Position numbers and translations under genes: made by a program. This document shows, in pieces, positions 6,324 through 61,905 of a stretch of 64,000 nt of DNA. The notes under the pieces are model-generated. The model was given only the letters and a program-made list of their open reading frames with translations, had not been told where the DNA came from and did no database searches. This stretch comes from Bispira polyomma (Eukaryota). Positions within the stretch are counted from its first letter, which is position 1; each line of letters opens with the position of its first letter. Location of the stretch: NCBI GenBank assembly GCA_965649765.1, contig OZ287751.1, positions 42,904,001 to 42,968,000 of the forward strand, written 5' to 3'.

Positions 6324-7177
6324 AGCTACTTGGTGTGTTACACAGATAGGGCTGAAGCACAACCTGTGAGTTTATACATATCAATAAAGACACAACCAGT
6401 ATGATTTTACAACAATATAATAGCCACTTTTTTTGTAATTCCTCCCACCTAATTGTTTCTTTGATAATTTTTATATCACCTGCCTCACCCACCAGCTGTG
6501 ATACTTTCTTTTCACACCGGTAAAGTTATGTACTTACTGCAGTCATGTCATACAATATTGTTTGTTTTTTATTCTTTCTATATAATTCCAGCAGATACCT
6601 GCCTTGGATATATTTCTGCAGAATTATTAATCAACAATGTTTTCTTTATAAAGACCACATCATTAACTGTACAAAATGATGCTTTTCCCTTACAAATTTT
6701 GTGGCACCTTTGTTAAACTCACATACTTGATAGATTATATATATCGTGTATAAACTAACATACAGTATTTACATATTATATATATCACTTACAAAATCAT
6801 ATTTTGTGTCCTCTTATTGAATGATGGTTATACACAGGTTTACACAACATGTCTTTTTGGCATATTTAGAGAGATTTCAGGAAAAAAAAAATAATATTAG
6901 CTGGCCAAGGGATGAAAAAAAATTAGTATTTATAGAGGTGGTCTATTAACACAATTAATAAATAGTTAAATGTGTCTGAAAAAAGATTTCTCAGATTAGA
7001 ATTGTGTACTTTGAGTGTGTCTAAAATATATATTAATTATATTAGAATTGTGTATTTTGAGTGGTCTTTGTTGTTAAAATATTTTTATGAAGCCAAAAAA
7101 AAAAAAAGACTTAATATTTGATATGACATATACTCATAGATTTACACTATAAAATGATTACACTTGATAGAAAGGAA

Positions 7178-7217
7178 TTCTCTCTGTAGAAAGATGAGGT
7201 TGGTCCTGAAAAGGACC
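7178..7217 (-). terminator. Histone mRNA 3' stem-loop and histone downstream element (copy 1; same position in all 27 copies)
   Basis: Sense strand AAA-GGTCCT-TTTC-AGGACC-AACC (stem-loop 7217-7202) fits the 6-bp stem/4-nt loop SLBP consensus. Purine-rich ACAGAGAGAA lies ~15 nt downstream (7187-7178). Confidence 0.93.
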
Positions 7218-7266
7218 TTTAATTTTAGTCACATGGACAAAACTCCAGCAGTGGCACTGTGGTGGT

Positions 7267-7830
7267 TTATTTCTTAGCCTTCTTTGGCTTTGCTGCTCGT
7301 TTAGCCTTTGGTTTCTTAGGCTTGGCCTTCCTTGCAGTCTTTTTGGCTGCCTTTGGTTTCCTCGATTTCTTGGCCTTACTCTTCTTAGCAGCAGCTTTCT
7401 TGGCCTTGGGTTTCTTAGCCTTCTTGACTTTCTTTGCCTTCTTGACTTTCTTCGCTTTCTTCTTCTTTTGCTTTTTGGTCTTTTTCTTTCTTGGAGCTTT
7501 AGGTACTTTTCCAACACGGAACCTTCCAGAGGCACCAGTTCCAGATGCTTGCTTAAACACACCAGTGGTCACCCCTCTTTTCAGGCTCATCTTGATGTGT
7601 GGTGTTAACCTGTTCATGTCCACCCTGTTGTTGCCAGCAATGTGCTTTTTGATGGCAGCCAGTGAAGTTCCTTTGCGATCTTTGGAAGCTCTTAGAGCAG
7701 TTAAAATCATGGCCTGTACAGGAGGATGGGTGGCAGCCTTCTTTGGCTTCCTTGCCCTCTTCTTAGGAGAAGCAGCCCTCTTTGCAGGAGATCCCGACTT
7801 AGCAGGTGATCCAGACCTTGATGCAGCCAT
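7267..7830 (-). CDS. H1: Histone H1, sperm-type-like, copy 1 (187 aa, A48)
   Basis: SPAK/SPAK/SPKK N-tail; globular domain HPPVQAMI..KDRKGTSLAAIKKHI..VFKQASGTGASGRFRVG; K/A/P-rich tail; TATA upstream, stem-loop downstream. Confidence 0.96.
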   Translation of the reverse strand: MAASRSGSPAKSGSPAKRAASPKKRARKPKKAATHPPVQAMILTALRASKDRKGTSLAAIKKHIAGNNRVDMNRLTPHIKMSLKRGVTTGVFKQASGTGASGRFRVGKVPKAPRKKKTKKQKKKKAKKVKKAKKVKKAKKPKAKKAAAKKSKAKKSRKPKAAKKTARKAKPKKPKAKRAAKPKKAKK

Positions 7831-7855
7831 TGTTATCTCTCTCAGTGGTTACAGA

Positions 7856-7985
7856 GAAATGAATCACTTGTTAATTAGAACTCACGTCTTTTATAATGAA
7901 ATTTCGGACGTCAAAGAAAGCCCCACAGACGTGACGTGATTCTTGTGTGTCTGGTTTGACAGGGGCTCTGAAATTTGTGTTAATA
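7856..7985 (-). promoter_or_regulatory. H1 proximal promoter (copy 1; repeated in each unit): initiator, TATA, CRE-like cluster, H1-box-like element
   Basis: Sense strand: GATTCATTTC initiator-like (7865-7856), TATAAAA (7895-7889), TGACGTCC (7913-7906), TAACACA (7982-7976; one mismatch to the H1 box AAACACA). TGACGTGA reads on the + strand at 7932-7939. Confidence 0.75.
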
Positions 7986-9302
7986 AGTCACAGGAATTTG
8001 TCTAATTTACTGGAGTAATTGATACATTCATTGAAATTTTTTCACAGAATCAATTTCTTACATATTCATCAGTCATATTCAATGTGTATTTGAAAAGTTA
8101 AGGTGTCTATTATTGCCAAAGTTCACTGAAAATGCATTTTCACTGCATGTGTGTAATGATTAAAAAATTAAGTATTTTTTTCAAATTACCTCCAATATAC
8201 CCTTTTAGTCATATTAAAGTAGCAATTTACACATATATATATTATAGATTACATGTTTTCCTTGCATAATACTGTAAGAATTGGTCATTTAGTCTAATTG
8301 GAGGTGAATAACTGTGCATATGAAGTGGAGTCAGAAACACAAATTCTAATCTAGCAACAAGCTACTTGGTGTGTTACACAGATAGGGCTGAAGCACAACC
8401 TGTGAGTTTATACATATCAATAAAGACACAACCAGTACGATTTTACAACAATATAATAGCCACTTTTTTCGTAATTCCTCCCACCTAATTGTTTCTTTGA
8501 TAATTTTTATATCACCTGCCTCACCCACCAGCTGTGATACTTTCTTTTCACACAGGTAAAGTTATGTACTTACTGCAGTCATGTCATACAATATTGTTTG
8601 TTTTTTATTCTTTCTATATAATTCCAGCAGATACCTGCCTTGGATATATTTCTGCAGAATTATTAATCAACAATGTTTTCTTTATAAAGACCACATCATT
8701 AACTGTACAAAATGATGCTTTTCCCTTACAAATTTTGTGGCACCTTTGTTAAACTCACATACTTGATAGATTATACATATCGTGTATAAACTAACATACA
8801 GTATTTACATATTATATATATCACTTACAAAATCATATTTTGTGTCCTCTTATTAAATGATGGTTATACACAGGTTTACACAACATGTCTTTTTGGCATA
8901 TTTAGAGAGATTTCAGGAAAAAAAAAATAATATTAGCTGGCCAAGGGATGAAAAAAAATTAGTATTTATAGAGGTGGTCTATTAACACAATTAATAAATA
9001 GTTAAATGTGTCTGAAAAAAGATTTCTCAGATTAGAATTGTGTACTTTGAGTGTGTCTAAAATATATATTAATTATATTAGAATTGTGTATTTTGAGTGG
9101 TCTTTGTTGTTAAAATATTTTTATGAAGCCAAAAAAAAAAAAAGACTTAATATTTGATATGACATATACTCATAGATTTACACTATAAAATGATTACACT
9201 TGATAGAAAGGAATTCTCTCTGTAGAAAGATGAGGTTGGTCCTGAAAAGGACCTTTAATTTTAGTCACATGGACAAAACTCCAGCAGTGGCACTGTGGTG
9301 GT

Positions 9303-9884
9303 TTATTTCTTAGCCTTCTTTGGCTTTGCTGCTCGTTTAGCCTTTGGTTTCTTAGGCTTGGCCTTCCTTGCAGTCTTTTTGGCTGCCTTTGGTTTCCTCG
9401 ATTTCTTGGCCTTACTCTTCTTAGCAGCAGCTTTCTTGGCCTTGGGTTTCTTAGCCTTCTTGACTTTCTTTGCCTTCTTCACTTTCTTTGCCTTCTTGAC
9501 TTACTTCGCTTTCTTCTTCTTTTGCTTCTTGGTCTTTTTCTTTCTTGGAGCTTTAGGTACTTTTCCAACACGGAACCTTCCAGAGGCACCAGTTCCAGAT
9601 GCTTGCTTAAACACACCAGTGGTCACCCCTCTTTTCAGGCTCATCTTGATGTGTGGTGTTAACCTGTTCATGTCCACCCTGTTGTTGCCAGCAATGTGCT
9701 TTTTGATGGCAGCCAGTGAAGTTCCCTTGCGATCTTTGGAAGTTCTTAGAGCAGTTAAAATCATGGCCTGTACAGGAGGATGGGTGGCAGCCTTCTTTGG
9801 CTTCCTTGCCCTCTTCTTAGGAGAAGCAGCCCTCTTTGCAGGAGATCCCGACTTAGCAGGTGATCCAGACCTTGATGCAGCCAT
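9303..9884 (-). pseudogene. H1: Histone H1 copy 2, 193-aa type with premature stop (127-aa product)
   Basis: AAA>TAA at 9503-9501; the rest of the tail is intact to the normal stop at 9303. Confidence 0.85.
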
Positions 9885-11354
9885 TGTTATCTCTCTCAGT
9901 GGTTACAGAGAAATGAATCACTTGTTAATTAGAGCTCACGTCTTTTATAATGAAATTTCGGACGTCAAAGAAAGCCCCACAGACGTGACGTGATTCTTGT
10001 GTGTCTGGATTGACAGGGGCTCTGAAATTTGTGTTAATAAGTCACAGGAATTTGTCTAATTTACTGGAGTAATTGATACATTCATTGAAATTTTTTCACA
10101 GAATCAATTTCTTACATATTCATCAGTCATATTCAATGTGTATTTGAAAAGTTAAGGTGTCTATTATTGCCAAAGTTCACTGAAAATGCATTTTCACTGC
10201 ATGTGTCTAATGATTAAAAAATTAAGTATTTTTTTCAAATTACCTCCAATATACCCTTTTAGTCATATTAAAGTAGCAATTTACACATATATATTATAGA
10301 TTACATGTTTTCCTTGCATAATACTGTAAGAATTGGTCATTTAGTCTAATTGGAGGTGAATAACTGTGCATATGAAGTGGAGTCAGAAACACAAATTCTA
10401 ATCTAGCAACAAGCTACTTGGTGTGTTACACAGATAGGGCTGAAGCACAACCTGTGAGTTTATACATATCAATAAAGACACAACCAGTATGATTTTACAA
10501 CAATATAATAGCCACTTTTTTTGTAATTCCTCCCACCTAATTGTTTCTTTGATAATTTTTATATCACCTGCCTCACCCACCAGCTGTGATACTTTCTTTT
10601 CACACCGGTAAAGTTATGTACTTACTGCAGTCATGTCATACAATATTGTTTGTTTTTTATTCTTTCTATATAATTCCAGCAGATACCTGCCTTGGATATA
10701 TTTCTGCAGAATTATTAATCAACAATGTTTTCTTTATAAAGACCACATCATTAACTGTACAAAATGATGCTTTTCCCTTACAAATTTTGTGGCACCTTTG
10801 TTAAACTCACATACTTGATAGATTATATATATCGTGTATAAACTAACATACAGTATTTACATATTATATATATCACTTACAAAATCATATTTTGTGTCCT
10901 CTTATTGAATGATGGTTATACACAGGTTTACACAACATGTCTTTTTGGCATATTTAGAGAGATTTCAGGAAAAAAAAAATAATATTAGCTGGCCAAGGGA
11001 TGAAAAAAAATTAGTATTTATAGAGGTGGTCTATTAACACAATTAATAAATAGTTAAATGTGTCTGAAAAAAGATTTCTCAGATTAGAATTGTGTACTTT
11101 GAGTGTGTCTAAAATATATATTAATTATATTAGAATTGTGTATTTTGAGTGGTCTTTGTTGTTAAAATATTTTTATGAAGCCAAAAAAAAAAAAAGACTT
11201 AATATTTGATATGACATATACTCATAGATTTACACTATAAAATGATTACACTTGATAGAAAGGAATTCTCTCTGTAGAAAGATGAGGTTGGTCCTGAAAA
11301 GGACCTTTAATTTTAGTCACATGGACAAAACTCCAGCAGTGGCACTGTGGTGGT

Positions 11355-11936
11355 TTATTTCTTAGCCTTCTTTGGCTTTGCTGCTCGTTTAGCCTTTGGT
11401 TTCTTAGGCTTGGCCTTCCTTGCAGTCTTTTTGGCTGCCTTTGGTTTCCTCGATTTCTTGGCCTTACTCTTCTTAGCAGCAGCTTTCTTGGCCTTGGGTT
11501 TCTTAGCCTTCTTGACTTTCTTTGCCTTCTTGACTTTCTTTGCCTTCTTGACTTTCTTCGCTTTCTTCTTCTTTTGCTTCTTGGTCTTTTTCTTTCTTGG
11601 AGCTTTAGGTACTTTTCCAACACGGAACCTTCCAGAGGCACCAGTTCCAGATGCTTGCTTAAACACACCAGTGGTCACCCCTCTTTTCAGGCTCATCTTG
11701 ATGTGTGGTGTTAACCTGTTCATGTCCACCCTGTTGTTGCCAGCAATGTGCTTTTTGATGGCAGCCAGTGAAGTTCCCTTGCGATCTTTGGAAGTTCTTA
11801 GAGCAGTTAAAATCATGGCCTGTACAGGAGGATGGGTGGCAGCCTTCTTTGGCTTCCTTGCCCTCTTCTTAGGAGAAGCAGCCCTCTTTGCAGGAGATCC
11901 CGACTTAGCAGGTGATCCAGACCTTGATGCAGCCAT
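11355..11936 (-). CDS. H1: Histone H1 copy 3 (193 aa)
   Basis: Intact ORF with an extra KKAKKV repeat. Confidence 0.96.
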   Translation of the reverse strand: MAASRSGSPAKSGSPAKRAASPKKRARKPKKAATHPPVQAMILTALRTSKDRKGTSLAAIKKHIAGNNRVDMNRLTPHIKMSLKRGVTTGVFKQASGTGASGRFRVGKVPKAPRKKKTKKQKKKKAKKVKKAKKVKKAKKVKKAKKPKAKKAAAKKSKAKKSRKPKAAKKTARKAKPKKPKAKRAAKPKKAKK

Positions 11937-13405
11937 TGTTATCTCTCTCAGTGGTTACAGAGAAATGAATCACTTGTTAATTAGAGCTCACGTCTTTTAT
12001 AATGAAATTTCGGACGTCAAAGAAAGCCCCACAGACGTGACGTGATTCTTGTGTGTCTGGATTGACAGGGGCTCTGAAATTTGTGTTAATAAGTCACAGG
12101 AATTTGTCTAATTTACTGGAGTAATTGATACATTCATTGAAATTTTTTCACAGAATCAATTTCTTACATATTCATCAGTCATATTCAATGTGTATTTGAA
12201 AAGTTAAGGTGTCTATTATTGCCAAAGTTCACTGAAAATGCATTTTCACTGCATGTGTCTAATGATTAAAAAATTAAGTATTTTTTTCAAATTACCTCCA
12301 ATATACCCTTTTAGTCATATTAAAGTAGCAATTTACACATATATATTATAGATTACATGTTTTCCTTGCATAATACTGTAAGAATTGGTCATTTAGTCTA
12401 ATTGGAGGTGAATAACTGTGCATATGAAGTGGAGTCAGAAACACAAATTCTAATCTAGCAACAAGCTACTTGGTGTGTTACACAGATAGGGCTGAAGCAC
12501 AACCTGTGAGTTTATACATATCAATAAAGACACAACCAGTATGATTTTACAACAATATAATAGCCACTTTTTTTGTAATTCCTCCCACCTAATTGTTTCT
12601 TTGATAATTTTTATATCACCTGCCTCACCCACCAGCTGTGATACTTTCTTTTCACACCGGTAAAGTTATGTACTTACTGCAGTCATGTCATACAATATTG
12701 TTTGTTTTTTATTCTTTCTATATAATTCCAGCAGATACCTGCCTTGGATATATTTCTGCAGAATTATTAATCAACAATGTTTTCTTTATAAAGACCACAT
12801 CATTAACTGTACAAAATGATGCTTTTCCCTTACAAATTTTGTGGCACCTTTGTTAAACTCACATACTTGATAGATTATACATATCGTGTATAAACTAACA
12901 TACAGTATTTACATATTATATATATCACTTACAAAATCATATTTTGTGTCCTCTTATTGAATGATGGTTATACACAGGTTTACACAACATGTCTTTTTGG
13001 CATATTTAGAGAGATTTCAGAAAAAAAAAAAAATATTAGCTGGCCAAGGGATGAAAAAAAATTAGTATTTATAGAGGTGGTCTATTAACACAATTAATAA
13101 ATAGTTAAATGTGTCTGAAAAAAGATTTCTCAGATTAGAATTGTGTACTTTGAGCGTGTCTAAAATATATATTAATTATATTAGAATTGTGTATTTTGAG
13201 TGGTCTTTGTTGTTAAAATATTTTTATGAAGCCAAAAAAAAAAAAAGACTTAATATTTGATATGACATATACTCATAGATTTACACTATAAAATGATTAC
13301 ACTTGATAGAAAGGAATTCTCTCTGTAGAAAGATGAGGTTGGTCCTGAAAAGGACCTTTAATTTTAGTCACATGGACAAAACTCCAGCAGTGGCACTGTG
13401 GTGGT

Positions 13406-13960
13406 TTATTTCTTAGCCTTCTTTGGCTTTGCTGCTCGTTTAGCCTTTGGTTTCTTAGGCTTGGCCTTCCTTGCAGTCTTTTTGGCTGCCTTTGGTTTCC
13501 TCGATTTCTTGGCCTTACTCTTCTTAGCAGCAGCTTTCTTGGCCTTGGGTTTCTTAGCCTTCTTGACTTTCTTTGCCTTCTTCACTTTCTTCTTCTTTTG
13601 CTTCTTGGTCTTTTTCTTTCTTGGAGCTTTAGGTACTTTTCCAACACGGAACCTTCCAGAGGCACCAGTTCCAGATGCTTGCTTAAACACACCAGTGGTC
13701 ACCCCTCTTTTCAGGCTCATCTTGATGTGTGGTGTTAACCTGTTCATGTCCACCCTGTTGTTGCCAGCAATGTGCTTTTTGATGGCAGCCAGTGAAGTTC
13801 CCTTGCGATCTTTGGAAGTTCTTAGAGCAGTTAAAATCATGGCCTGTACAGGAGGATGGGTGGCAGCCTTCTTTGGCTTCCTTGCCCTCTTCTTAGGAGA
13901 AGCAGCCCTCTTTGCAGGAGATCCCGACTTAGCAGGTGATCCAGACCTTGATGCAGCCAT
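13406..13960 (-). CDS. H1: Histone H1 copy 4 (184 aa)
   Basis: Intact ORF, array member. Confidence 0.96.
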   Translation of the reverse strand: MAASRSGSPAKSGSPAKRAASPKKRARKPKKAATHPPVQAMILTALRTSKDRKGTSLAAIKKHIAGNNRVDMNRLTPHIKMSLKRGVTTGVFKQASGTGASGRFRVGKVPKAPRKKKTKKQKKKKVKKAKKVKKAKKPKAKKAAAKKSKAKKSRKPKAAKKTARKAKPKKPKAKRAAKPKKAKK

Positions 13961-15986: not shown

Positions 15987-17457
15987 TGTTATCTCTCTCA
16001 GTGGTTACAGAGAAATGAATCACTTGTTAATTAGAGCTCACGTCTTTTATAATGAAATTTCGGACGTCAAAGAAAGCCCCACAGACGTGACGTGATTCTT
16101 GTGTGTCTGGATTGACAGGGGCTCTGAAATTTGTGTTAATAAGTCACAGGAATTTGTCTAATTTACTGGAGTAATTGATACATTCATTGAAATTTTTTCA
16201 CAGAATCAATTTCTTACATATTCATCAGTCATATTCAATGTGTATTTGAAAAGTTAAGGCGTCTATTATTGCCAAAGTTCACTGAAAATGCATTTTCACT
16301 GCATGTGTGTAATGATTAAAAAATTAAGTATTTTTTTCAAATTACCTTCAATATACCCTTTTAGTCATATTAAAGTAGCAATTTACACATATATATTATA
16401 GATTACATGTTTTCCTTGCATAATACTGTAAGAATTGGTCATTTAGTCTAATTGGAGGTGAATAACTGTGCATATGAAGTGGAGTCAGAAACACAAATTC
16501 TAATCTAGCAACAAGCTACTTGGTGTGTTACACAGATAGGGCTGAAGCACAACCTGTGAGTTTATACATATCAATAAAGACACAACCAGTATGATTTTAC
16601 AACAATGTAATAGCCACTTTTTTTGTAATTCCTCCCACCTAATTGTTTCTTTGATAATTTTTATATCACCTGCCTCACCCACCAGCTGTGATACTTTCTT
16701 TTCACACCGGTAAAGTTATGTACTTATTGCAGTCATGTCATACAATATTGTTTGTTTTTTATTCTTTCTATATAATTCCAGCAGATACCTGCCTTGGATA
16801 TATTTCTGCAGAATTATTAATCAACAATGTTTTCTTTATAAAGACCACATCATTAACTGTACAAAATGATGCTTTTCCCTTACAAATTTTGTGGCACCTT
16901 TGTTAAACTCACATACTTGATAGATTATACATATCGTGTATAAACTAACATACAGTATTTACATATTATATATATCACTTACAAAATCATATTTTGTGTC
17001 CTCTTATTGAATGATGGTTATACACAGGTTTACACAACATGTCTTTTTGGCATATTTAGAGAGATTTCAGAAAAAAAAAAAATAATATTAGCTGGCCAAG
17101 GGATGAAAAAAAATTAGTATTTATAGAGGTGGTCTATTAACACAATTAATAAATAGTTAAATGTGTCTGAAAAAAGATTTCTCAGATTAGAATTGTGTAC
17201 TTTGAGTGTGTCTAAAATATATATTAATTATATTAGAATTGTGTATTTTGAGTGGTCTTTGTTGTTAAAATATTTTTATGAAGCCAAAAAAAAAAAAAGA
17301 CTTAATATTTGATATGACATATACTCATAGATTTACACTATAAAATGATTACACTTGATAGAAAGGAATTCTCTCTGTAGAAAGATGAGGTTGGTCCTGA
17401 AAAGGACCTTTAATTTTAGTCACATGGACAAAACTCCAGCAGTGGCACTGTGGTGGT

Positions 17458-18021
17458 TTATTTCTTAGCCTTCTTTGGCTTTGCTGCTCGTTTAGCCTTT
17501 GGTTTCTTAGGCTTGGCCTTCCTTGCAGTCTTTTTGGCTGCCTTTGGTTTCCTCGATTTCTTGGCCTTACTCTTCTTAGCAGCAGCTTTCTTGGCCTTGG
17601 GTTTCTTAGCCTTCTTGACTTTCTTTGCCTTCTTGACTTTCTTCGCTTTCTTCTTCTTTTGCTTCTTGGTCTTTTTCTTTCTTGGAGCTTTAGGTACTTT
17701 TCCAACACGGAACCTTCCAGAGGCACCAGTTCCAGATGCTTGCTTAAACACACCAGTGGTCACCCCTCTTTTCAGGCTCATCTTGATGTGTGGTGTTAAC
17801 CTGTTCATGTCCACCCTGTTGTTGCCAGCAATGTGCTTTTTGATGGCAGCCAGTGAAGTTCCCTTGCGATCTTTGGAAGTTCTTAGAGCAGTTAAAATCA
17901 TGGCCTGTACAGGAGGATGGGTGGCAGCCTTCTTTGGCTTCCTTGCCCTCTTCTTAGGAGAAGCAGCCCTCTTTGCAGGAGATCCCGACTTAGCAGGTGA
18001 TCCAGACCTTGATGCAGCCAT
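17458..18021 (-). CDS. H1: Histone H1 copy 6 (187 aa)
   Basis: Intact ORF, array member. Confidence 0.96.
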   Translation of the reverse strand: MAASRSGSPAKSGSPAKRAASPKKRARKPKKAATHPPVQAMILTALRTSKDRKGTSLAAIKKHIAGNNRVDMNRLTPHIKMSLKRGVTTGVFKQASGTGASGRFRVGKVPKAPRKKKTKKQKKKKAKKVKKAKKVKKAKKPKAKKAAAKKSKAKKSRKPKAAKKTARKAKPKKPKAKRAAKPKKAKK

Positions 18022-19493
18022 TGTTATCTCTCTCAGTGGTTACAGAGAAATGAATCACTTGTTAATTAGAGCTCACGTCTTTTATAATGAAATTTCGGAC
18101 GTCAAAGAAAGCCCCACAGACGTGACGTGATTCTTGTGTGTCTGGATTGACAGGGGCTCTGAAATTTGTGTTAATAAGTCACAGGAATTTGTCTAATTTA
18201 CTGGAGTAATTGATACATTCATTGAAATTTTTTCACAGAATCAATTTCTTACATATTCATCAGTCATATTCAATGTGTATTTGAAAAGTTAAGGTGTCTA
18301 TTATTGCCAAAGTTCACTGAAAATGCATTTTCACTGCATGTGTCTAATGATTAAAAAATTAAGTATTTTTTTCAAATTACCTCCAATATACCCTTTTAGT
18401 CATATTAAAGTAGCAATTTACACATATATATTATAGATTACATGTTTTCCTTGCATAATACTGTAAGAATTGGTCATTTAGTCTAATTGGAGGTGAATAA
18501 CTGTGCATATGAAGTGGAGTCAGAAACACAAATTCTAATCTAGCAACAAGCTACTTGGTGTGTTACACAGATAGGGCTGAAGCACAACCTGTGAGTTTAT
18601 ACATATCAATAAAGACACAACCAGTATGATTTTACAACAATATAATAGCCACTTTTTTTGTAATTCCTCCCACCTAATTGTTTCTTTGATAATTTTTATA
18701 TCACCTGCCTCACCCACCAGCTGTGATACTTTCTTTTCACACCGGTAAAGTTATGTACTTACTGCAGTCATGTCATACAATATTGTTTGTTTTTTATTCT
18801 TTCTATATAATTCCAGCAGATACCTGCCTTGGATATATTTCTGCAGAATTATTAATCAACAATGTTTTCTTTATAAAGACCACATCATTAACTGTACAAA
18901 ATGATGCTTTTCCCTTACAAATTTTGTGGCACCTTTGTTAAACTCACATACTTGATAGATTATACATATCGTGTATAAACTAACATACAGTATTTACATA
19001 TTATATATATCACTTACAAAATCATATTTTGTGTCCTCTTATTGAATGATGGTTATACACAGGTTTACACAACATGTCTTTTTGGCATATTTAGAGAGAT
19101 TTCAGAAAAAAAAAAAAATAATATTAGCTGGCCAAGGGATGAAAAAAAATTAGTATTTATAGAGGTGGTCTATTAACACAATTAATAAATAGTTAAATGT
19201 GTCTGAAAAAAGATTTCTCAGATTAGAATTGTGTACTTTGAGCGTGTCTAAAATATATATTAATTATATTAGAATTGTGTATTTTGAGTGGTCTTTGTTG
19301 TTAAAATATTTTTATGAAGCCAAAAAAAAAAAAAGACTTAATATTTGATATGACATATACTCATAGATTTACACTATAAAATGATTACACTTGATAGAAA
19401 GGAATTCTCTCTGTAGAAAGATGAGGTTGGTCCTGAAAAGGACCTTTAATTTTAGTCACATGGACAAAACTCCAGCAGTGGCACTGTGGTGGT

Positions 19494-24110: not shown

Positions 24111-25582
24111 TGTTATCTCTCTCAGTGGTTACAGAGAAATGAATCACTTGTTAATTAGAGCTCACGTCTTTTATAATGAAATTTCGGACGTCAAAGAAAG
24201 CCCCACAGACGTGACGTGATTCTTGTGTGTCTGGATTGACAGGGGCTCTGAAATTTGTGTTAATAAGTCACAGGAATTTGTCTAATTTACTGGAGTAATT
24301 GATACAATCATTGAAATTTTTTCACAGAATCAATTTCTTACATATTCATCAGTCATATTCAATGTGTATTTGAAAAGTTAAGGTGTCTATTATTGCCAAA
24401 GTTCACTGAAAATGCATTTTCACTGCATGTGTCTAATGATTAAAAAATTAAGTATTTTTTTCAAATTACCTCCAATATACCCTTTTAGTCATATTAAAGT
24501 AGCAATTTACACATATATATTATAGATTACATGTTTTCCTTGCATAATACTGTAAGAATTGGTCATTTAGTCTAATTGGAGGTGAATAACTGTGCATATG
24601 AAGTGGAGTCAGAAACACAAATTCTAATCTAGCAACAAGCTACTTGGTGTGTTACACAGATAGGGCTGAAGCACAACCTGTGAGTTTATACATATCAATA
24701 AAGACACAACCAGTATGATTTTACAACAATATAATAGCCACTTTTTTTGTAATTCCTCCCACCTAATTGTTTCTTTGATAATTTTTATATCACCTGCCTC
24801 ACCCACCAGCTGTGATACTTTCTTTTCACACCGGTAAAGTTATGTACTTACTGCAGTCATGTCATACAATATTGTTTGTTTTTTATTCTTTCTATATAAT
24901 TCCAGCAGATACCTGCCTTGGATATATTTCTGCAGAATTATTAATCAACAATGTTTTCTTTATAAAGACCACATCATTAACTGTACAAAATGATGCTTTT
25001 CCCTTACAAATTTTGTGGCACCTTTGTTAAACTCACATACTTGATAGATTATACATATCGTGTATAAACTAACATACAGTATTTACATATTATATATATC
25101 ACTTACAAAATCATATTTTGTGTCCTCTTATTGAATGATGGTTATACACAGGTTTACACAACATGTCTTTTTGGCATATTTAGAGAGATTTCAGAAAAAA
25201 AAAAAAATAATATTAGCTGGCCAAGGGATGAAAAAAAATTAGTATTTATAGAGGTGGTCTATTAACACAATTAATAAATAGTTAAATGTGTCTGAAAAAA
25301 GATTTCTCAGATTAGAATTGTGTACTTTGAGTGTGTCTAAAATATATATTAATTATATTAGAATTGTGTATTTTGAGTGGTCTTTGTTGTTAAAATATTT
25401 TTATGAAGCCAAAAAAAAAAAAAGACTTAATATTTGATATGACATATACTCATAGATTTACACTATAAAATGATTACACTTGATAGAAAGGAATTCTCTC
25501 TGTAGAAAGATGAGGTTGGTTCTGAAAAGGACCTTTAATTTTAGTCACATGGACAAAACTCCAGCAGTGGCACTGTGGTGGT

Positions 25583-46458: not shown

Positions 46459-47929
46459 TGTTATCTCTCTCAGTGGTTACAGAGAAATGAATCACTTGTT
46501 AATTAGAGCTCACGTCTTTTATAATGAAATTTCGGACGTCAAAGAAAGCCCCACAGACGTGACGTGATTCTTGTGTGTCTGGATTGACAGGGGCTCTGAA
46601 ATTTGTGTTAATAAGTCACAGGAATTTGTCTAATTTACTGGAGTAATTGATACATTCATTGAAATTTTTTCACAGAATCAATTTCTTACATATTCATCAG
46701 TCATATTCAATGTGTATTTGAAAAGTTAAGGCGTCTATTATTGCCAAAGTTCACTGAAAATGCATTTTCACTGCATGTGTGTAATGATTAAAAAATTAAG
46801 TATTTTTTTCAAATTACCTTCAATATACCCTTTTAGTCATATTAAAGTAGCAATTTACACATATATATTATAGATTACATGTTTTCCTTGCATAATACTG
46901 TAAGAATTGGTCATTTAGTCTAATTGGAGGTGAATAACTGTGCATATGAAGTGGAGTCAGAAACACAAATTCTAATCTAGCAACAAGCTACTTGGTGTGT
47001 TACACAGATAGGGCTGAAGCACAACCTGTGAGTTTATACATATCAATAAAGACACAACCAGTATGATTTTACAACAATGTAATAGCCACTTTTTTGTAAT
47101 TCCTCCCACCTAATTGTTTCTTTGATAATTTTTATATCACCTGCCTCACCCACCAGCTGTGATACTTTCTTTTCACACCGGTAAAGTTATGTACTTACTG
47201 CAGTCATGTCATACAATATTGTTTGTTTTTTATTCTTTCTATATAATTCCAGCAGATACCTGCCTTGGATATATTTCTGCAGAATTATTAATCAACAATG
47301 TTTTCTTTATAAAGACCACATCATTAACTGTACAAAATGATGCTTTTCCCTTACAAATTTTGTGGCACCTTTGTTAAACTCACATACTTGATAGATTATA
47401 CATATCGTGTATAAACTAACATACAGTATTTACATATTATATATATCACTTACAAAATCATATTTTGTGTCCTCTTATTGAATGATGGTTATACACAGGT
47501 TTACACAACATGTCTTTTTGGCATATTTAGAGAGATTTCAGAAAAAATAAAAAATAATATTAGCTGGCCAAGGGATGAAAAAAAATTAGTATTTATAGAG
47601 GTGGTCTATTAACACAATTAATAAATAGTTAAATGTGTCTGAAAAAAGATTTCTCAGATTAGAATTGTGTACTTTGAGTGTGTCTAAAATATATATTAAT
47701 TATATTAGAATTGTGTATTTTGAGTGGTCTTTGTTGTTAAAATATTTTTATGAAGCCAAAAAAAAAAAAAGACTTAATATTTGATATGACATATACTCAT
47801 AGATTTACACTATAAAATGATTACACTTGATAGAAAGGAATTCTCTCTGTAGAAAGATGAGGTTGGTCCTGAAAAGGACCTTTAATTTTAGTCACATGGA
47901 CAAAACTCCAGCAGTGGCACTGTGGTGGT

Positions 47930-48492
47930 TTATTTCTTAGCCTTCTTTGGCTTTGCTGCTCGTTTAGCCTTTGGTTTCTTAGGCTTGGCCTTCCTTGCAG
48001 TCTTTTTGGCTGCCTTTGGTTTCCTCGATTTCTTGGCCTTACTCTTCTTAGCAGCAGCTTTCTTGGCCTTGGGTTTCTTAGCCTTCTTGACTTTCTTTGC
48101 CTTCTTGACTTTCTTCGCTTTCTTCTTCTTTTGCTTCTTGGTCTTTTTCTTTCTTGGAGCTTTAGGTACTTTTCCAACACGGAACCTTCCAGAGGCACCA
48201 GTTCCAGATGCTTGCTTAAACACACCAGTGGTCACCCCTCTTTCAGGCTCATCTTGATGTGTGGTGTTAACCTGTTCATGTCCACCCTGTTGTTGCCAGC
48301 AATGTGCTTTTTGATGGCAGCCAGTGAAGTTCCCTTGCGATCTTTGGAAGTTCTTAGAGCAGTTAAAATCATGGCCTGTACAGGAGGATGGGTGGCAGCC
48401 TTCTTTGGCTTCCTTGCCCTCTTCTTAGGAGAAGCAGCCCTCTTTGCAGGAGATCCCGACTTAGCAGGTGATCCAGACCTTGATGCAGCCAT
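47930..48492 (-). pseudogene. H1: Histone H1 copy 21, 1-nt deletion frameshift (86-aa product) or homopolymer assembly error
   Basis: + strand CCCCTCTTTCAGG (T3 at 48241-48243) versus CCCCTCTTTTCAGG in other copies; reads KMSLKEG*. Confidence 0.7.
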
Positions 48493-54589: not shown

Positions 54590-56061
54590 TGTTATCTCTC
54601 TCAGTGGTTACAGAGAAATGAATCACTTGTTAATTAGAGCTCACGCCTTTTATAATGAAATTTCGGACGTCAAAGAAAGCCCCACAGACGTGACGTGATT
54701 CTTGTGTGTCTGGATTGACAGGGGCTCTGAAATTTGTGTTAATAAGTCACAGGAATTTGTCTAATTTACTGGAGTAATTGATACATTCATTGAAATTTTT
54801 TCACAGAATCAATTTCTTACATATTCATCAGTCATATTCAATGTGTATTTGAAAAGTTAAGGCGTCTATTATTGCCAAAGTTCACTGAAAATGCATTTTC
54901 ACTGCATGTGTGTAATGATTAAAAAATTAAGTATTTTTTTCAAATTACCTTCAATATACCCTTTTAGTCATATTAAAGTAGCAATTTACACATATATATT
55001 ATAGATTACATGTTTTCCTTGCATAATACTGTAAAAATTGGTCATTTAGTCTAATTGGAGGTGAATAACTGTGCATATGAAGTGGAGTCAGAAAAACAAA
55101 TTCTAATCTAGCAACAAGCTACTTGGTGTGTTACACAGATAGGGCTGAAGCACAACCTGTGAGTTTATACATATCAATAAAGACACAACCAGTATGATTT
55201 TACAACAATGTAATAGCCACTTTTTTTGTAATTCCTCCCACCTAATTGTTTCTTTGATAATTTTTATATCACCTGCCTCACCCACCAGCTGTGATACTTT
55301 CTTTTCACACCGGTAAAGTTATGTACTTACTGCAGTCATGTCATACAATATTGTTTGTTTTTTATTCTTTCTATATAATTCCAGCAGATACCTGCCTTGG
55401 ATATATTTCTGCAGAATTATTAATCAACAATGTTTTCTTTATAAAGACCACATCATTAACTGTACAAAATGATGCTTTTCCCTTACAAATTTTGTGGCAC
55501 CTTTGTTAAACTCACATACTTGATAGATTATACATATCGTGTATAAACTAACATACAGTATTTACATATTATATATATCACTTACAAAATCATATTTTGT
55601 GTCCTCTTATTGAATGATGGTTATACACAGGTTTACACAACATGTCTTTTTGGCATATTTAGAGAGATTTCAGAAAAAAAAAAAAATAATATTAGCTGGC
55701 CAAGGGATGAAAAAAAATTAGTATTTATAGAGGTGGTCTATTAACACAATTAATAAATAGTTAAATGTGTCTGAAAAAAGATTTCTCAGATTAGAATTGT
55801 GTACTTTGAGCGTGTCTAAAATATATATTAATTATATTAGAATTGTGTATTTTGAGTGGTCTTTGTTGTTAAAATATTTTTATGAAGCCAAAAAAAAAAA
55901 AAGACTTAATATTTGATATGACATATACTCATAGATTTACACTATAAAATGATTACACTTGATAGAAAGGAATTCTCTCTGTAGAAAGATGAGGTTGGTC
56001 CTGAAAAGGACCTTTAATTTTAGTCACATGGACAAAACTCCAGCAGTGGCACTGTGGTGGT

Positions 56062-56616
56062 TTATTTCTTAGCCTTCTTTGGCTTTGCTGCTCGTTTAGC
56101 CTTTGGTTTCTTAGGCTTGGCCTTCCTTGCAGTCTTTTTGGCTGCCTTTGGTTTCCTCGATTTCTTGGCCTTACTCTTCTTAGCAGCAGCTTTCTTGGCC
56201 TTGGGTTTCTTAGCCTTCTTGACTTTCTTTGCCTTCTTCACTTTCTTCTTCTTTTGCTTCTTGGTCTTTTTCTTTCTTGGAGCTTTAGGTACTTTTCCAA
56301 CACGGAACCTTCCAGAGGCACCAGTTCCAGATGCTTGCTTAAACACACCAGTGGTCACCCCTCTTTTCAGGCTCATCTTGATGTGTGGTGTTAACCTGTT
56401 CATGTCCACCCTGTTGTTGCCAGCAATGTGCTTTTTGATGGCAGCCAGTGAAGTTCCCTTGCGATCTTTGGAAGCTCTTAGAGCAGTTAAAATCATGGCC
56501 TGTACAAGAGGAAGGGTGGCAGCCTTCTTTGGCTTCCTTGCCCTCTTCTTAGGAGAAGCAGCCCTCTTTGCAGGAGATCCCGACTTAGCAGGTGATCCAG
56601 ACCTTGATGCAGCCAT
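56062..56616 (-). CDS. H1: Histone H1 copy 25 (184 aa; H35L, P37L, A48; TATA mutated)
   Basis: Intact ORF, ATLPLV; TATAAAA>TATGAAA. Confidence 0.9.
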   Translation of the reverse strand: MAASRSGSPAKSGSPAKRAASPKKRARKPKKAATLPLVQAMILTALRASKDRKGTSLAAIKKHIAGNNRVDMNRLTPHIKMSLKRGVTTGVFKQASGTGASGRFRVGKVPKAPRKKKTKKQKKKKVKKAKKVKKAKKPKAKKAAAKKSKAKKSRKPKAAKKTARKAKPKKPKAKRAAKPKKAKK

Positions 56617-58086
56617 TGTTATCTCTCTCAGTGGTTACAGAGAAATGAATCACTTGTTAATTAGAGCTCACGTCTTTCATAATGAAATTTCGGACGTCAA
56701 AGAAAGCCCCACAAACGTGACGTGATTCTTGTGTGTCTGGATTGACAGGGGCTCTGAAATTTGTGTTAATAAGTCACAGGAATTTGTCTAATTTACTGGA
56801 GTAATTGATACATTCATTGAAATTTTTTCACAGAATCAATTTCTTACATATTCATCAGTCATATTCAATGTGTATTTGAAAAGTTAAGGCGTCTATTATT
56901 GCCAAAGTTCACTGAAAATGCATTTTCACTGCATGTGTGTAATGATTAAAAAATTAAGTATTTTTTTCAAATTACCTTCAATATACCCTTTTAGTCATAT
57001 TAAAGTAGCAATTTACACATATATATTATAGATTACATGTTTTCCTTGCATAATACTGTAAGAATTGGTCATTTAGTCTAATTGGAGGTGAATAACTGTG
57101 CATATGAAGTGGAGTCAGAAACACAAATTCTAATCTAGCAACAAGCTACTTGGTGTGTTACACAGATAGGGCTGAAGCACAACCTGTGAGTTTATACATA
57201 TCAATAAAGACACAACCAGTATGATTTTACAACAATGTAATAGCCACTTTTTTGTAATTCCTCCCACCTAATTGTTTCTTTGATAATTTTTATATCACCT
57301 GCCTCACCCACCAGCTGTGATACTTTCTTTTCACACCGGTAAAGTTATGTACTTACTGCAGTCATGTCATACAATATTGTTTGTTTTTTATTCTTTCTAT
57401 ATAATTCCAGCAGATACCTGCCTTGGATATATTTCTGCAGAATTATTAATCAACAATGTTTTCTTTATAAAGACCACATCATTAACTGTACAAAATGATG
57501 CTTTTCCCTTACAAATTTTGTGGCACCTTTGTTAAACTCACATACTTGATAGATTATACATATCGTGTATAAACTAACATACAGTATTTACATATTATAT
57601 ATATCACTTACAAAATCATATTTTGTGTCCTCTTATTGAATGATGGTTATACACAGGTTTACACAACATGTCTTTTTGGCATATTTAGAGAGATTTCAGA
57701 AAAAAAAAAAATAATATTAGCTGGCCAAGGGATGAAAAAAAATTAGTATTTATAGAGGTGGTCTATTAACACAATTAATAAATAGTTAAATGTGTCTGAA
57801 AAAAGATTTCTCAGATTAGAATTGTGTACTTTGAGTGTGTCTAAAATATATATTAATTATATTAGAATTGTGTATTTTGAGTGGTCTTTGTTGTTAAAAT
57901 ATTTTTATGAAGCCAAAAAAAAAAAAAGACTTAATATTTGATATGACATATACTCATAGATTTACACTATAAAATGATTACACTTGATAGAAAGGAATTC
58001 TCTCTGTAGAAAGATGAGGTTGGTCCTGAAAAGGACCTTTAATTTTAGTCACATGGACAAAACTCCAGCAGTGGCACTGTGGTGGT

Positions 58087-58650
58087 TTATTTCTTAGCCT
58101 TCTTTGGCTTTGCTGCTCGTTTAGCCTTTGGTTTCTTAGGCTTGGCCTTCCTTGCAGTCTTTTTGGCTGCCTTTGGTTTCCTCGATTTCTTGGCCTTACT
58201 CTTCTTAGCAGCAGCTTTCTTGGCCTTGGGTTTCTTAGCCTTCTTGACTTTCTTTGCCTTCTTCACTTTCTTCGCTTTCTTCTTCTTTTGCTTCTTGGTC
58301 TTTTTCTTTCTTGGAGCTTTAGGTACTTTTCCAACACGGAACCTTCCAGAGGCACCAGTTCCAGATGCTTGCTTAAACACACCAGTGGTCACCCCTCTTT
58401 TCAGGCTCATCTTGATGTGTGGTGTTAACCTGTTCATGTCCACCCTGTTGTTGCCAGCAATGTGCTTTTTGATGGCAGCCAGTGAAGTTCCCTTGCGATC
58501 TTTGGAAGCTCTTAGAGCAGTTAAAATCATGGCCTGTACAGGAGGATGGGTGGCAGCCTTCTTTGGCTTCCTTGCCCTCTTCTTAGGAGAAGCAGCCCTC
58601 TTTGCAGGAGATCCCGACTTAGCAGGTGATCCAGACCTTGATGCAGCCAT
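58087..58650 (-). CDS. H1: Histone H1 copy 26 (187 aa, A48)
   Basis: Intact ORF, array member. Confidence 0.96.
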   Translation of the reverse strand: MAASRSGSPAKSGSPAKRAASPKKRARKPKKAATHPPVQAMILTALRASKDRKGTSLAAIKKHIAGNNRVDMNRLTPHIKMSLKRGVTTGVFKQASGTGASGRFRVGKVPKAPRKKKTKKQKKKKAKKVKKAKKVKKAKKPKAKKAAAKKSKAKKSRKPKAAKKTARKAKPKKPKAKRAAKPKKAKK

Positions 58651-60122
58651 TGTTATCTCTCTCAGTGGTTACAGAGAAATGAATCACTTGTTAATTAGAG
58701 CTCACGTCTTTTATAATGAAATTTCGGACGTCAAAGAAAGCCCCACAGACGTGACGTGATTCTTGTGTGTCTGGATTGACAGGGGCTCTGAAATTTGTGT
58801 TAATAAGTCACAGGAATTTGTCTAATTTACTGGAGTAATTGATACATTCATTGAAATTTTTTCACAGAATCAATTTCTTACATATTCATCAGTCATATTC
58901 AATGTGTATTTGAAAAGTTAAGGTGTCTATTATTGCCAAAGTTCACTGAAAATGCATTTTCACTGCATGTGTGTGATGATTAAAAAATTAAGTATTTTTT
59001 TCAAATTACCTTCAATATACCCTTTTAGTCATATTAAAGTAGCAATTTACACATATATATTATAGATTACATGTTTTCCTTGCATAATACTGTAAGAATT
59101 GGTCATTTAGTCTAATTGGAGGTGAATAACTGTGCATATGAAGTGGAGTCAGAAACACAAATTCTAATCTAGCAACAAGCTACTTGGTGTGTTACACAGA
59201 TAGGGCTGAAGCACAACCTGTGAGTTTATACATATCAATAAAGACACAACCAGTATGATTTTACAACAATATAATAGCCACTTTTTTTGTAATTCCTCCC
59301 ACCTAATTGTTTCTTTGATAATTTTTATATCACCTGCCTCACCCACCAGCTGTGATACTTTCTTTTCACACCGGTAAAGTTATGTACTTACTGCAGTCAT
59401 GTCATACAATATTGTTTGTTTTTTATTCTTTCTATATAATTCCAGCAGATACCTGCCTTGGATATATTTCTGCAGAATTATTAATCAACAATGTTTTCTT
59501 TATAAAGACCACATCATTAACTGTACAAAATGATGCTTTTCCCTTACAAATTTTGTGGCACCTTTGTTAAACTCACATACTTGATAGATTATACATATCG
59601 TGTATAAACTAACATACAGTATTTACATATTATATATATCACTTACAAAATCATATTTTGTGTCCTCTTATTGAATGATGGTTATACACAGGTTTACACA
59701 ACATGTCTTTTTGGCATATTTAGAGAGATTTCAGAAAAAAAAAAAAATAATATTAGCTGGCCAAGGGATGAAAAAAAATTAGTATTTATAGAGGTGGTCT
59801 ATTAACACAATTAATAAATAGTTAAATGTGTCTGAAAAAAGATTTCTCAGATTAGAATTGTGTACTTTGAGTGTGTCTAAAATATATATTAATTATATTA
59901 GAATTGTGTATTTTGAGTGGTCTTTGTTGTTAAAATATTTTTATGAAGCCAACCAAAAAAAAAGACTTAATATTTGATATGACATATACTCATAGATTTA
60001 CACTATAAAATGATTACACTTGATAGAAAGGAATTCTCTCTGTAGAAAGATGAGGTTGGTCCTGAAAAGGACCTTTAATTTTAGTCACATGGACAAAACT
60101 CCAGCAGTGGCACTGTGGTGGT

Positions 60123-60686
60123 TTATTTCTTAGCCTTCTTTGGCTTTGCTGCTCGTTTAGCCTTTGGTTTCTTAGGCTTGGCCTTCCTTGCAGTCTTTTT
60201 GGCTGCCTTTGGTTTCCTCGATTTCTTGGCCTTACTCTTCTTAGCAGCAGCTTTCTTGGCCTTGGGTTTCTTAGCCTTCTTGACTTTCTTTGCCTTCTTC
60301 GCTTTCTTCGCTTTCTTCTTCTTTTGCTTCTTGGTCTTTTTCTTTCTTGGAGCTTTAGGTACTTTTCCAACACGGAACCTTCCAGAGGCACCAGTTCCAG
60401 ATGCTTGCTTAAACACACCAGTGGTCACCCCTCTTTTCAGGCTCATCTTGATGTGTGGTGTTAACCTGTTCATGTCCACCCTGTTGTTGCCAGCAATGTG
60501 CTTTTTGATGGCAGCCAGTGAAGTTCCCATGCGATCTTTGGAAGTTCTTAGAGCAGTTAAAATCATGGCCTGTACAGGAGGATGGGTGGCAGCCTTCTTT
60601 GGCTTCCTTGCCCTCTTCTTAGGAGAAGCAGCCCTCTTTGCAGGAGATCCCGACTTAGCAGGTGATCCAGACCTTGATGCAGCCAT
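60123..60686 (-). CDS. H1: Histone H1 copy 27 (187 aa; K53M and one V>A in the tail)
   Basis: Intact ORF, KDRMGTS; terminal, more diverged unit. Confidence 0.94.
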   Translation of the reverse strand: MAASRSGSPAKSGSPAKRAASPKKRARKPKKAATHPPVQAMILTALRTSKDRMGTSLAAIKKHIAGNNRVDMNRLTPHIKMSLKRGVTTGVFKQASGTGASGRFRVGKVPKAPRKKKTKKQKKKKAKKAKKAKKVKKAKKPKAKKAAAKKSKAKKSRKPKAAKKTARKAKPKKPKAKRAAKPKKAKK

Positions 60687-61633
60687 TGTTATCTCTCTCA
60701 GTGGTTACAGAGAAATGAATCACTTGTTAATTAGAGCTCACGTCTTTTATAATGAAATTTCGGACGTCAAAGAAAGCCCCACAGACGTGACGTGATTCTT
60801 GTGTGTCTGGATTGACAGGGGCTCTGAAATTTGTGTTAATAAGTCACAGGAATTTGTCTAATTTACTGGAGTGATTGATACATTCATTGAAATTTTTCAC
60901 AGAATCAATTTCTTACATATTCATCAGTCATATTCAATGTGTATTTGAAAAGTTAGGGTGTCTATTATTGCCAAAGTTCACTGAAAATGCATTTTCACTG
61001 CATGTGTGTAATGATTAAAAAATTAAGCATTTTTTCCAAATTACCTCCAAATTACCCTTTTAGTCATATTAAAGTAGCAATTTACACATATATATTATAG
61101 ATTACATGTTTTTTCCTTGCATAATACTGTAAGAATTGATCATTTAGTCTAATTGGACGTGAATAACTGTGCATATGAAGTGAAGTCAGAAAGACAAATT
61201 CTAATCTAGCAACAAGCTACTTGGTGTGTTACACAGATAGGGCTGAAGCACAACCTGTGAGTTTATACATATCAATAAAGACACAACCAGTATGATTTTA
61301 CAACAATATAATAGCCACTTTTTTCGTAATTCCTCTCACCTAATTGTTACTTTGATAATTTTTATATCACCTGCCTCACCCACCAGCTGTGATACTTTCT
61401 TTTCACACAGGTAAAGTTGTGTACTTACTGCAGTCATGTCATACAATATTGTTTGTTTTTTATTCTTTCTATATAATTCCAACAGATACCTGCCTTGGAT
61501 ATATTTCTGCAGAATTATTAATCAACAATGTTTTCTTTATAAAGACCACATCATCAACTGTACAAAATGATGCTTTTCCCTTACAAATTTTGTCGCACCT
61601 TTGTTAAACTCACATACTTGATATATTATAAAA

Positions 61634-61905
61634 AGAGAAATGAATCACTTGTTAATTAGAGCTCACGTCTTTTATAATGAAATTTCGGACGTCAGAGAAA
61701 GCCCCACAGACGTGACGTGATTCTTGTGTGTCTGGATTGACAGGGGCTCTGAAATTTGTGTTAATATATTAATAAGTCACAGGAATTTGTCTAATTTACT
61801 GGAGTAATTGACACATTCATTGCAAACTTTTTTCACAGAATCAAGTTCTTACATATTCATCAGTCATATTCAATGTGTATTTGAAAAGTTAAGGTGCCTA
61901 TTGTG
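61634..61905 (-). pseudogene. Orphan H1 promoter (28th unit with CDS and stem-loop deleted)
   Basis: Spacer ...ACTTGATATATTATA is joined directly to AGAGAAATGAATCACTTG...TTTTATAATG...GGACGTCA...GTGACGTGA; ~1.1 kb is missing relative to a normal unit. Confidence 0.9.

Follow-up and report, generated by a model that had tools for sequence, protein, structure and literature searches.

In this study we analyzed a 64,000-bp stretch of the genome of Bispira polyomma (hereafter the window; contig OZ287751.1, referred to as C4, at 42.90-42.97 Mb, in a 1.04-Gb assembly), and found that it harbors a tandem array of 55.6 kb dedicated to a single, divergent type of linker histone H1. The array is composed of 27 head-to-tail units, each carrying one H1 gene on the minus strand, and this type of H1 was found nowhere else in the genome. 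Judging from its sequence, the protein is an old H1 paralogue, and the array may serve the bulk supply of one special linker histone, most likely for sperm, a reading to which we assign a probability of roughly 0.4. H1-only arrays have previously been known for the ordinary H1 of mussels, and here one array is devoted to a divergent variant that carries SPKK motifs and is rich in arginine.

Tandem array of a variant H1 gene

The array extends from 6324 to 61902 of the window, with a unit spacing of 2024-2052 bp. Repeat finding gave 27-28 copies at 97-100% identity, and the units are more than 99% alike, with a few dozen variable columns among about 2,050 aligned. All the 27 H1 start codons belong to the minus strand, the first being at 7830 and the last at 60686 (note that the copy number of 27 is the count in the assembly). 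By blastn of the flanking sequences against one unit, the left edge was set at 6324; on the right, the units stay in register up to 61630, beyond which a short out-of-register piece closes the array at 61902. The first-pass annotation of this DNA, made from the letters alone, had described a complete 27-copy array with both ends inside the window, in good agreement with these edges. The window sequence contains no N. Tandem Repeats Finder, with its period limit of 500, reported no repeat in the window.

Each unit consists of about 150 bp of promoter, an intronless open reading frame (ORF) of 184-193 codons, a 3' stem-loop and a downstream element, while the remaining 1.2 kb or so is an AT-rich spacer that is not conserved. 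Using this genome's own core histones as tblastn queries, we detected no H3, H2B, H2A or H4 in the window plus 10 kb on each side, and Rfam gave no match to 5S rRNA or small nuclear RNA (snRNA) at gathering scores within the window; the earlier description of H1-only units, free of core histone and 5S genes, was thus confirmed. No tRNA was found in the window by ARAGORN. The spacer probably conceals no gene, given the lack of any Rfam or tRNA match and given that the spacer cannot be aligned with that of the array of the closest relative (see below), and the plus-strand GTG-initiated ORFs of 223-232 aa turned out to be F/L-rich antisense artefacts of the minus-strand H1 gene.

The H1 ORF is intact in 25 of the 27 units and encodes 184, 187 or 193 aa, the 184-aa form carrying one 9-bp KKV-type repeat fewer than the 187-aa form (for details of the forms and of the altered copies see Table 1). 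The frameshift in copy 21 may be real or a homopolymer error. The two unit types, 184-aa and 187-aa, differ by the 9-bp repeat and by linked changes in the spacer, and are irregularly interleaved along the array; in all, at least eight unit haplotypes were distinguished by linked, interleaved insertions, deletions and single-nucleotide changes. Copies near both ends of the array carry extra changes, and the divergent or broken copies are found mostly near the ends. This is the pattern expected for concerted evolution, with unequal exchange or gene conversion maintaining the likeness of the copies while the edges escape.

The near-identity of the copies (>99%) and the presence of one frameshift in a homopolymer run would also fit an error of assembly, by which a short cluster was over-expanded or by which copies were collapsed or misjoined. 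The at least eight linked and interleaved haplotypes, however, argue against an assembler merely copying one unit, and the distinct edge copies, the unique flanks on both sides and the finding of like arrays in independent assemblies of relatives all speak against such an error, which we consider highly improbable.

The encoded linker histone

The translation indicates a three-part build, with an N tail of 33 residues, a globular domain and a C tail of about 80 residues. Residues 35-106 match the Pfam Linker_histone family (PF00538) with E = 1.2e-24, and the best relatives with a solved structure are H1.0 and H5 (E = 6e-17). A single-sequence AlphaFold2 model shows helices at 38-48, 57-67 and 77-88, where the pLDDT of 53-65 corresponds to low confidence. 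Lysine makes up 31% of the whole protein, and the C tail, composed of KKAKKV repeats, is lysine-rich rather than arginine-rich. The motifs noted in the first-pass annotation (SPAK, SPAK, SPKK, THPPV, RVDMN and GTGASGRFRVG) are all present in the translation, and the S-P-x-K sites, three in number, are confined to the N tail. The arginine content of the window H1 is 8.0% (K/R ratio, 3.9) against 0.5-1.0% (K/R, 32-65) for the canonical H1s of this genome, that is, at least eight-fold that of the canonical H1s of the same animal. For comparison, the sperm H1 of Chaetopterus contains 12.6 mol% arginine with a K/R of 2, and calf somatic H1 contains 1.8% with a K/R of 15 (PMC5943286). SPKK motifs are known to bind the A/T-rich minor groove and to be released by phosphorylation of the serine (PMC9903204). 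No named PL-I sequence was present among the matches of any search made.

Relationship to sperm H1 and to canonical H1

We performed an exhaustive HMMER search with residues 1-112 against 1.84 billion representative proteins. Two sea-urchin proteins, annotated as "Histone H1, sperm" of Sphaerechinus and "Histone H1, gonadal" of Echinolampas, were among the best 30 matches. The globular domain of the Echinolampas protein aligns with that of the window H1 without a gap at 51% identity, against 40% identity and a 2-residue gap with the canonical H1 of this genome. In a word-indexed search with the globular domain alone, no sea-urchin protein was found among the 44 candidates. The top two matches of the exhaustive search were P0267, a 746-aa protein with eight globular-domain matches, and P0268, a 374-aa protein with two; both are long predicted proteins, which could reflect the fusion of tandem copies in the gene models or a genuine multi-domain architecture.

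A careful tree was constructed from 45 globular domains and 82 columns, a length at which deep branches are beyond resolution. The best tree contains a branch with the SPKK-type subfamily, to which the window H1 belongs, and the two sea-urchin sperm H1s on one side; the non-sperm H1 of the sea urchin Diadema is on the other, as are H1s from acorn worm, amphioxus and mosquito. Using a larger set, the tree in which a clade of the window subfamily and sperm H1 was forced lies 32.5 log-likelihood units above the quick free tree. Kinship of the window H1 with sea-urchin sperm H1 is therefore favoured by the sequence comparison, with weak support. A forced clade of the window H1 and the canonical H1s of this genome was rejected by the AU test (p = 3.2e-5). 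A recent origin of the window H1 from the canonical H1s was thus rejected, and the protein is an old H1 paralogue. The first-pass annotation had named grouping of the globular domain with somatic replication-dependent H1 as the outcome that would speak against a sperm-type H1, and this grouping failed in the same test (p = 3e-5).

Conservation in other organisms

The closest protein outside this genome (L001) is 78% identical to the window H1 and likewise comes from an H1-only array, in which 20 kb contain 12 copies spaced 1.69 kb apart. The H1 of a third organism, 76% identical, is carried by two contigs (L044 and L045) that are circular permutations of one unit of about 1.8 kb, and that of a fourth organism, 62% identical, by 1.83-kb contigs with overlapping ends (L046 and L047). 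Permuted and self-overlapping contigs such as these are the signature of collapsed tandem repeats. Another relative (L020) shows an H1-only repeat of 5.65 kb, and two more distant relatives are single genes. Taken together, the window-type H1 is also carried by H1-only arrays in at least three other organisms. No named lophotrochozoan relative was present among the best matches in the protein collections searched.

Between the window array and that of L001, only the segment from -153 bp of the ATG to about 100 bp past the stop codon can be aligned, with 75-77% identity. For this pair the synonymous divergence (dS) is about 1.1, and the ratio of nonsynonymous to synonymous divergence (dN/dS) is 0.12, with 0.08 for the globular domain and 0.12 for the N tail. 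The window H1, including its N tail, is under purifying selection and is firmly constrained. A decaying array is unlikely because 25 of the 27 ORFs are intact and because of this low dN/dS of 0.12. In the nearest relatives, the N tail holds between one and four S/T-P-x-K motifs, in most cases two to four, the C tail has almost without exception no such motif, and the arginine content ranges from 2 to 10%.

Other histone genes of the genome

The first-pass annotation had regarded the array as stand-alone, but this turned out to be misleading, since two bigger H1-only arrays are located on the same chromosome. Array B (C4:54706000-54812400) carries about 62 copies of a 198-aa H1 with 1727-bp spacing, and array C (C4:96760600-96965300) about 90 copies with a spacing of about 2250 bp, including copies of several different lengths and at least one with a frameshift. 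In addition, a lone H1 copy of the array-C type was found at C4:97097387-97097896, 130 kb past array C. Arrays B and C both encode H1s of 198 aa, which share 45-48% identity with the window H1 and, over the globular domain, 84% with each other. Named proteins related to them are the "H1-delta-like" H1s of Mytilus, Lottia, Aplysia, a chiton and the annelid Paralvinella. Thus C4 carries three H1-only arrays, each of which is uniform for its own H1. In our literature search no description was found of three paralogue-specific H1 arrays on one chromosome, nor of a dedicated, evolutionarily conserved array for an SPKK-bearing, arginine-rich H1 variant.

The core histones are encoded by H3-H2B-H2A-H4 quartet repeats of about 4.8-4.9 kb without H1, located at several loci on C1, C2 and C3 (Table 1). 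In the quartet unit that was read (C2:97480000-97485100), H2A and H2B form a divergent pair, and the 3' signals of the four genes are nearly identical.

The high copy number, the tandem layout and the stem-loop 3' end (see below) of the window genes are hallmarks of histone genes for fast S phases, and for this reason the window H1 could be an embryonic or early-proliferation subtype that feeds the rapid cleavage divisions, in the way of the high-copy early histone repeats of sea urchins, and is not specific to sperm. A promoter module held in common with the canonical H1 arrays and the strong purifying selection fit this explanation as well. Embryos, however, could already be served by the canonical H1 genes of arrays B and C, which number about 150. 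The known cleavage-stage H1s are, moreover, longer and less basic. The arginine enrichment and the clustering of SPxK sites in the N tail are traits of the sperm type (PMC5943286; PMC9903204), and an embryonic subtype is, in our estimation, rather unlikely, though it should be kept in mind as a serious alternative to a sperm linker histone.

Promoter and 3'-processing signals

The H1 gene of the window has the build of a replication-dependent histone gene, with an intronless ORF, a TATA promoter and a 3' stem-loop, and we infer from the sequence that it is expressed in S phase. The H1 promoter module, in which TGACGTCCGAAATTTC is located two to three bases before the TATA box, is found at 18089-18104 of the window. 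All three H1 paralogues of the genome have this TGACGTCCGAAATTTC-TATA module, as do relatives in other species (L001 and L045), and the intact 26-bp promoter string is present in 26 of the 27 units. The H4 promoter of this genome carries a looser version of the H1 module, TGAGGTCTGAAA. Further upstream, the window promoters carry the block CACAAATTTCAGAGCCCCTGTC, which is kept in the array of the closest relative (L001) but is absent from the canonical H1 promoters.

The stem-loop GGTCCTTTTCAGGACC, with a 6-bp stem and a 4-nt loop, agrees with the GGYYYU-UUUC-ARRRCC pattern. Its match to the Rfam Histone3 model (RF00032) is 28.2 bits with E = 2e-5, which is under the gathering score of 34. In folding prediction it reaches -9.3 kcal/mol (z = -3.4), a value that no sequence among 200 shuffles attained. 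No AATAAA was found within 200 nt past the stem-loop. Since a histone stem-loop lies 50 nt past the stop codon, the mRNA should lack poly(A), as had been expected in the first-pass annotation.

Immediately 3' of the stem-loop lies a presumed histone downstream element, which includes a purine-rich AGAGAGAA block about 20 nt beyond the stem. Up to three mismatches allowed, the combination of the window stem and this downstream element gave 27 matches in the genome, all of them in this array. The element is conserved in the two closest species (L001, and L044/L045). Elsewhere in the genome the common 3' signal consists of the stem-loop GGCTCTTTTCAGAGCC followed by ACCyATAT..TTTCAAGAAC, as seen in the four core genes of one quartet unit, in those genes of arrays B and C that were read, and in the lone H1 copy. 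The stem of the window H1 differs from the GGCTCTTTTCAGAGCC stem but is not itself private to the array. Our literature search also found no description of a private post-stem-loop element for such an H1 variant.

Beside the histone genes, about 800 dispersed copies of AAGGTCCTTTTCAGGACCAC were detected in the genome, with the stem of the window H1 and not the core-histone one. Eight copies were read, and most of these have the common downstream element of the core type (TTTCAAGAAC or a close variant of it, followed by AGCTGTTTGTTAC); in some copies there are two stem-loops 31 bp apart. With the Rfam model of U7 snRNA, the three best matches in the genome are sub-threshold and lie in a dispersed repeat with similar flanks (C1:73052658, C9:22468440 and C2:92328237). 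A pattern directed against the downstream element gave zero matches, and the matches to a looser U7 pattern proved to be AT-rich repeats without a 3' hairpin.

The promoter module as in arrays B and C, the histone stem-loop and the wide distribution and conservation of the H1 subfamily would also be accounted for if the window H1 were a general replication-dependent subtype used alongside the other two H1s in all cycling cells, adding to the diversity of linker histones like the somatic H1 subtypes of vertebrates. However, its composition is far from that of arrays B and C, and its private downstream element is kept in three species whereas the other histone genes examined share one element, which points to separate control. 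We therefore regard a general subtype as improbable.

Table 1. Positions of the array, its genes and signals, and other histone loci (positions refer to the window unless a contig is given)
Feature	Position	Strand	Remarks
Whole tandem array	6324..61902	-	27 units, one H1 each; in register to 61630, then a 269-bp piece
Out-of-register unit piece closing the array	61634..61902	-	269 bp, 94% identity
H1 gene, 187-aa form (representative)	17458..18021	-	14 copies: 10 identical, 4 with 1-2 substitutions
H1 gene, 184-aa form (representative)	13406..13960	-	11 copies: 9 identical, 2 with substitutions
H1 gene, 193-aa form	11355..11936	-	additional 18-bp repeat in the C tail
H1 gene, copy 2	9501..9884	-	AAA-to-TAA nonsense change in the extra 18-bp repeat; ORF cut to 127 aa
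H1 gene, copy 21	47929..48492	-	187-aa-type unit; one base missing from an AAAA run following codon 84, giving frameshift and early stop
Proximal promoter	18079..18104	-	TGACGTCCGAAATTTC element, 2 bases, then TATA box TATAAAAG, about 65 nt upstream of the ATG
Upstream block CACAAATTTCAGAGCCCCTGTC	18149..18170	-	28 copies in the window
Histone 3' stem-loop GGTCCTTTTCAGGACC	17393..17408	-	50 nt past the stop codon
Presumed histone downstream element, AACC..TCTTTC..AGAGAGAA	17366..17392	-	immediately 3' of the stem-loop
Stem-loop of copy 10	25518..25533	-	G-to-A change weakens the stem
Decayed non-LTR retrotransposon, flank outside the array	4875..6362	-	RVT_1, E = 6e-10, plus weak endonuclease match; abuts the left edge
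Core histone quartet arrays	C1 30.8-31.1 Mb; C2 91.4-91.5, 97.5, 99.8 and 102.1 Mb; C3 71.6-71.8 Mb		

Possible role of the array

If the array indeed provides a linker histone in bulk, the window H1 genes would be transcribed in a cell-cycle-coupled fashion from an H1-type promoter, giving an mRNA without poly(A). The 3' processing of this mRNA would depend on the stem-loop and proceed through the gene-specific downstream element, so that it could be controlled apart from all other histone mRNAs, and the high copy number would meet a burst of demand in dividing cells. If the protein belongs to sperm chromatin, phosphorylation of the SPxK sites would loosen the binding of the protein to the minor groove and dephosphorylation would tighten it, as described for sea-urchin sperm H1. 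The cells in demand may tentatively be taken to be spermatogonia and the protein to be the sperm linker histone, because the arginine enrichment, the clustered SPxK sites of the N tail and the affinity to sea-urchin sperm H1 all favour the male germ line.

Several points weigh against the assignment to sperm. The label itself comes from the sequence, and in the exhaustive search the scores of H1s from mosquito and acorn worm are similar to those of the sperm H1s. The branch joining the window subfamily to sperm H1 was supported by 57/73, and forcing monophyly of the sea-urchin H1s costs 20 log-likelihood units and was not rejected (p = 0.13). The likeness to sea-urchin sperm H1 put forward in the first-pass annotation thus stands as to the gap-free identity, the place among the best 30 matches and the side of the best tree, but is weakened by this branch support, by the monophyly test and by the similar scores of other H1s. 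Since the proximal promoter has the module of the canonical H1 arrays, transcription may be under shared control and not driven by a germline-specific promoter, and the strong purifying selection is unlike that of many sperm proteins, which evolve fast. No U7 snRNA gene was identified by genome-wide searches with the Rfam U7 model, the anti-element pattern and the looser pattern, which bears on the role proposed for the downstream element. Sperm-specific histone genes known so far are single or low in copy number, as is that for sea-urchin SpH1. In Hydractinia, the sperm-specific histone genes occupy unique loci on the chromosomes (PMC9903204).

We may go one step further and suppose that the window H1 and its relatives represent an ancient sperm-type linker histone of bilaterians, to which sea-urchin sperm H1 also belongs, and which in worms has been taken into mass production by a private array with a private downstream element, perhaps together with a dedicated U7-like partner, letting the germ cells switch this H1 on separately from every other histone gene. 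We consider this extended proposal unlikely, but, if true, it would mean that one genome has a second channel for histone 3' processing, under a control of its own.

Should the window H1 be a sperm linker histone, the array would represent a rare case of a sperm chromatin protein produced from a multi-copy histone array of the cell-cycle type, and the sperm H1s of worms and sea urchins would have a common origin. The private post-stem-loop element offers a clean natural system for the study of gene-by-gene regulation of histone mRNA processing.

Comparison with known systems

Tandem clusters composed only of H1 and located apart from the core-histone quartets have been established in Mytilus (Drabent 1999, Eirin-Lopez 2002 and Albig 2003, as cited in PMC4106214), and the precedent of mussel clusters invoked in the first-pass annotation is a valid one. 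The Mytilus clusters resemble the window array in their head-to-tail H1-only units, in their separation from the core quartets and in their presence at more than one locus. They encode canonical H1-delta-like or orphon H1, which is matched in the present genome by arrays B and C (C4:54.7 and 96.8 Mb). The window array differs from them in that it encodes a different, old paralogue and carries its own 3' element.

With respect to the protein, the sea-urchin sperm H1s (Echinolampas crassa P02257 and Sphaerechinus granularis Q99284) share with the window H1 the S-P-x-K/R repeats before the globular domain, the raised arginine content and the GRFRVG end, but the N tail of the Echinolampas protein contains about six motifs and its arginine content is 13%. 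Among annelids, the H1 gene of Chaetopterus variopedatus is said, in work by del Gaudio from 1998, to lie inside a five-gene histone repeat and not in an H1-only array. The sperm H1 of this worm is similar to the window H1 as an annelid H1 with high arginine, the K/R being 2 against 3.9 (PMC5943286). The SPKK variants of H2B in the sperm of Hydractinia and sea urchins also carry N-terminal SPKK motifs switched by phosphorylation, and are made in dividing sperm progenitors (PMC9903204). These variants are, however, of H2B and are encoded at unique single loci without arrays (PMC9903204). The protamine-like PL-I proteins are sperm proteins that take the place of histones and combine an H1 globular domain with arginine-rich tails, in contrast to the lysine-rich C tail of the window H1. 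With respect to gene supply, the early (alpha) histone repeats of sea urchins consist of hundreds of tandem copies with stem-loop 3' ends and supply the rapid S phases. Each unit of these early repeats carries all five histone genes, whereas the unit of the window array carries only the variant H1.

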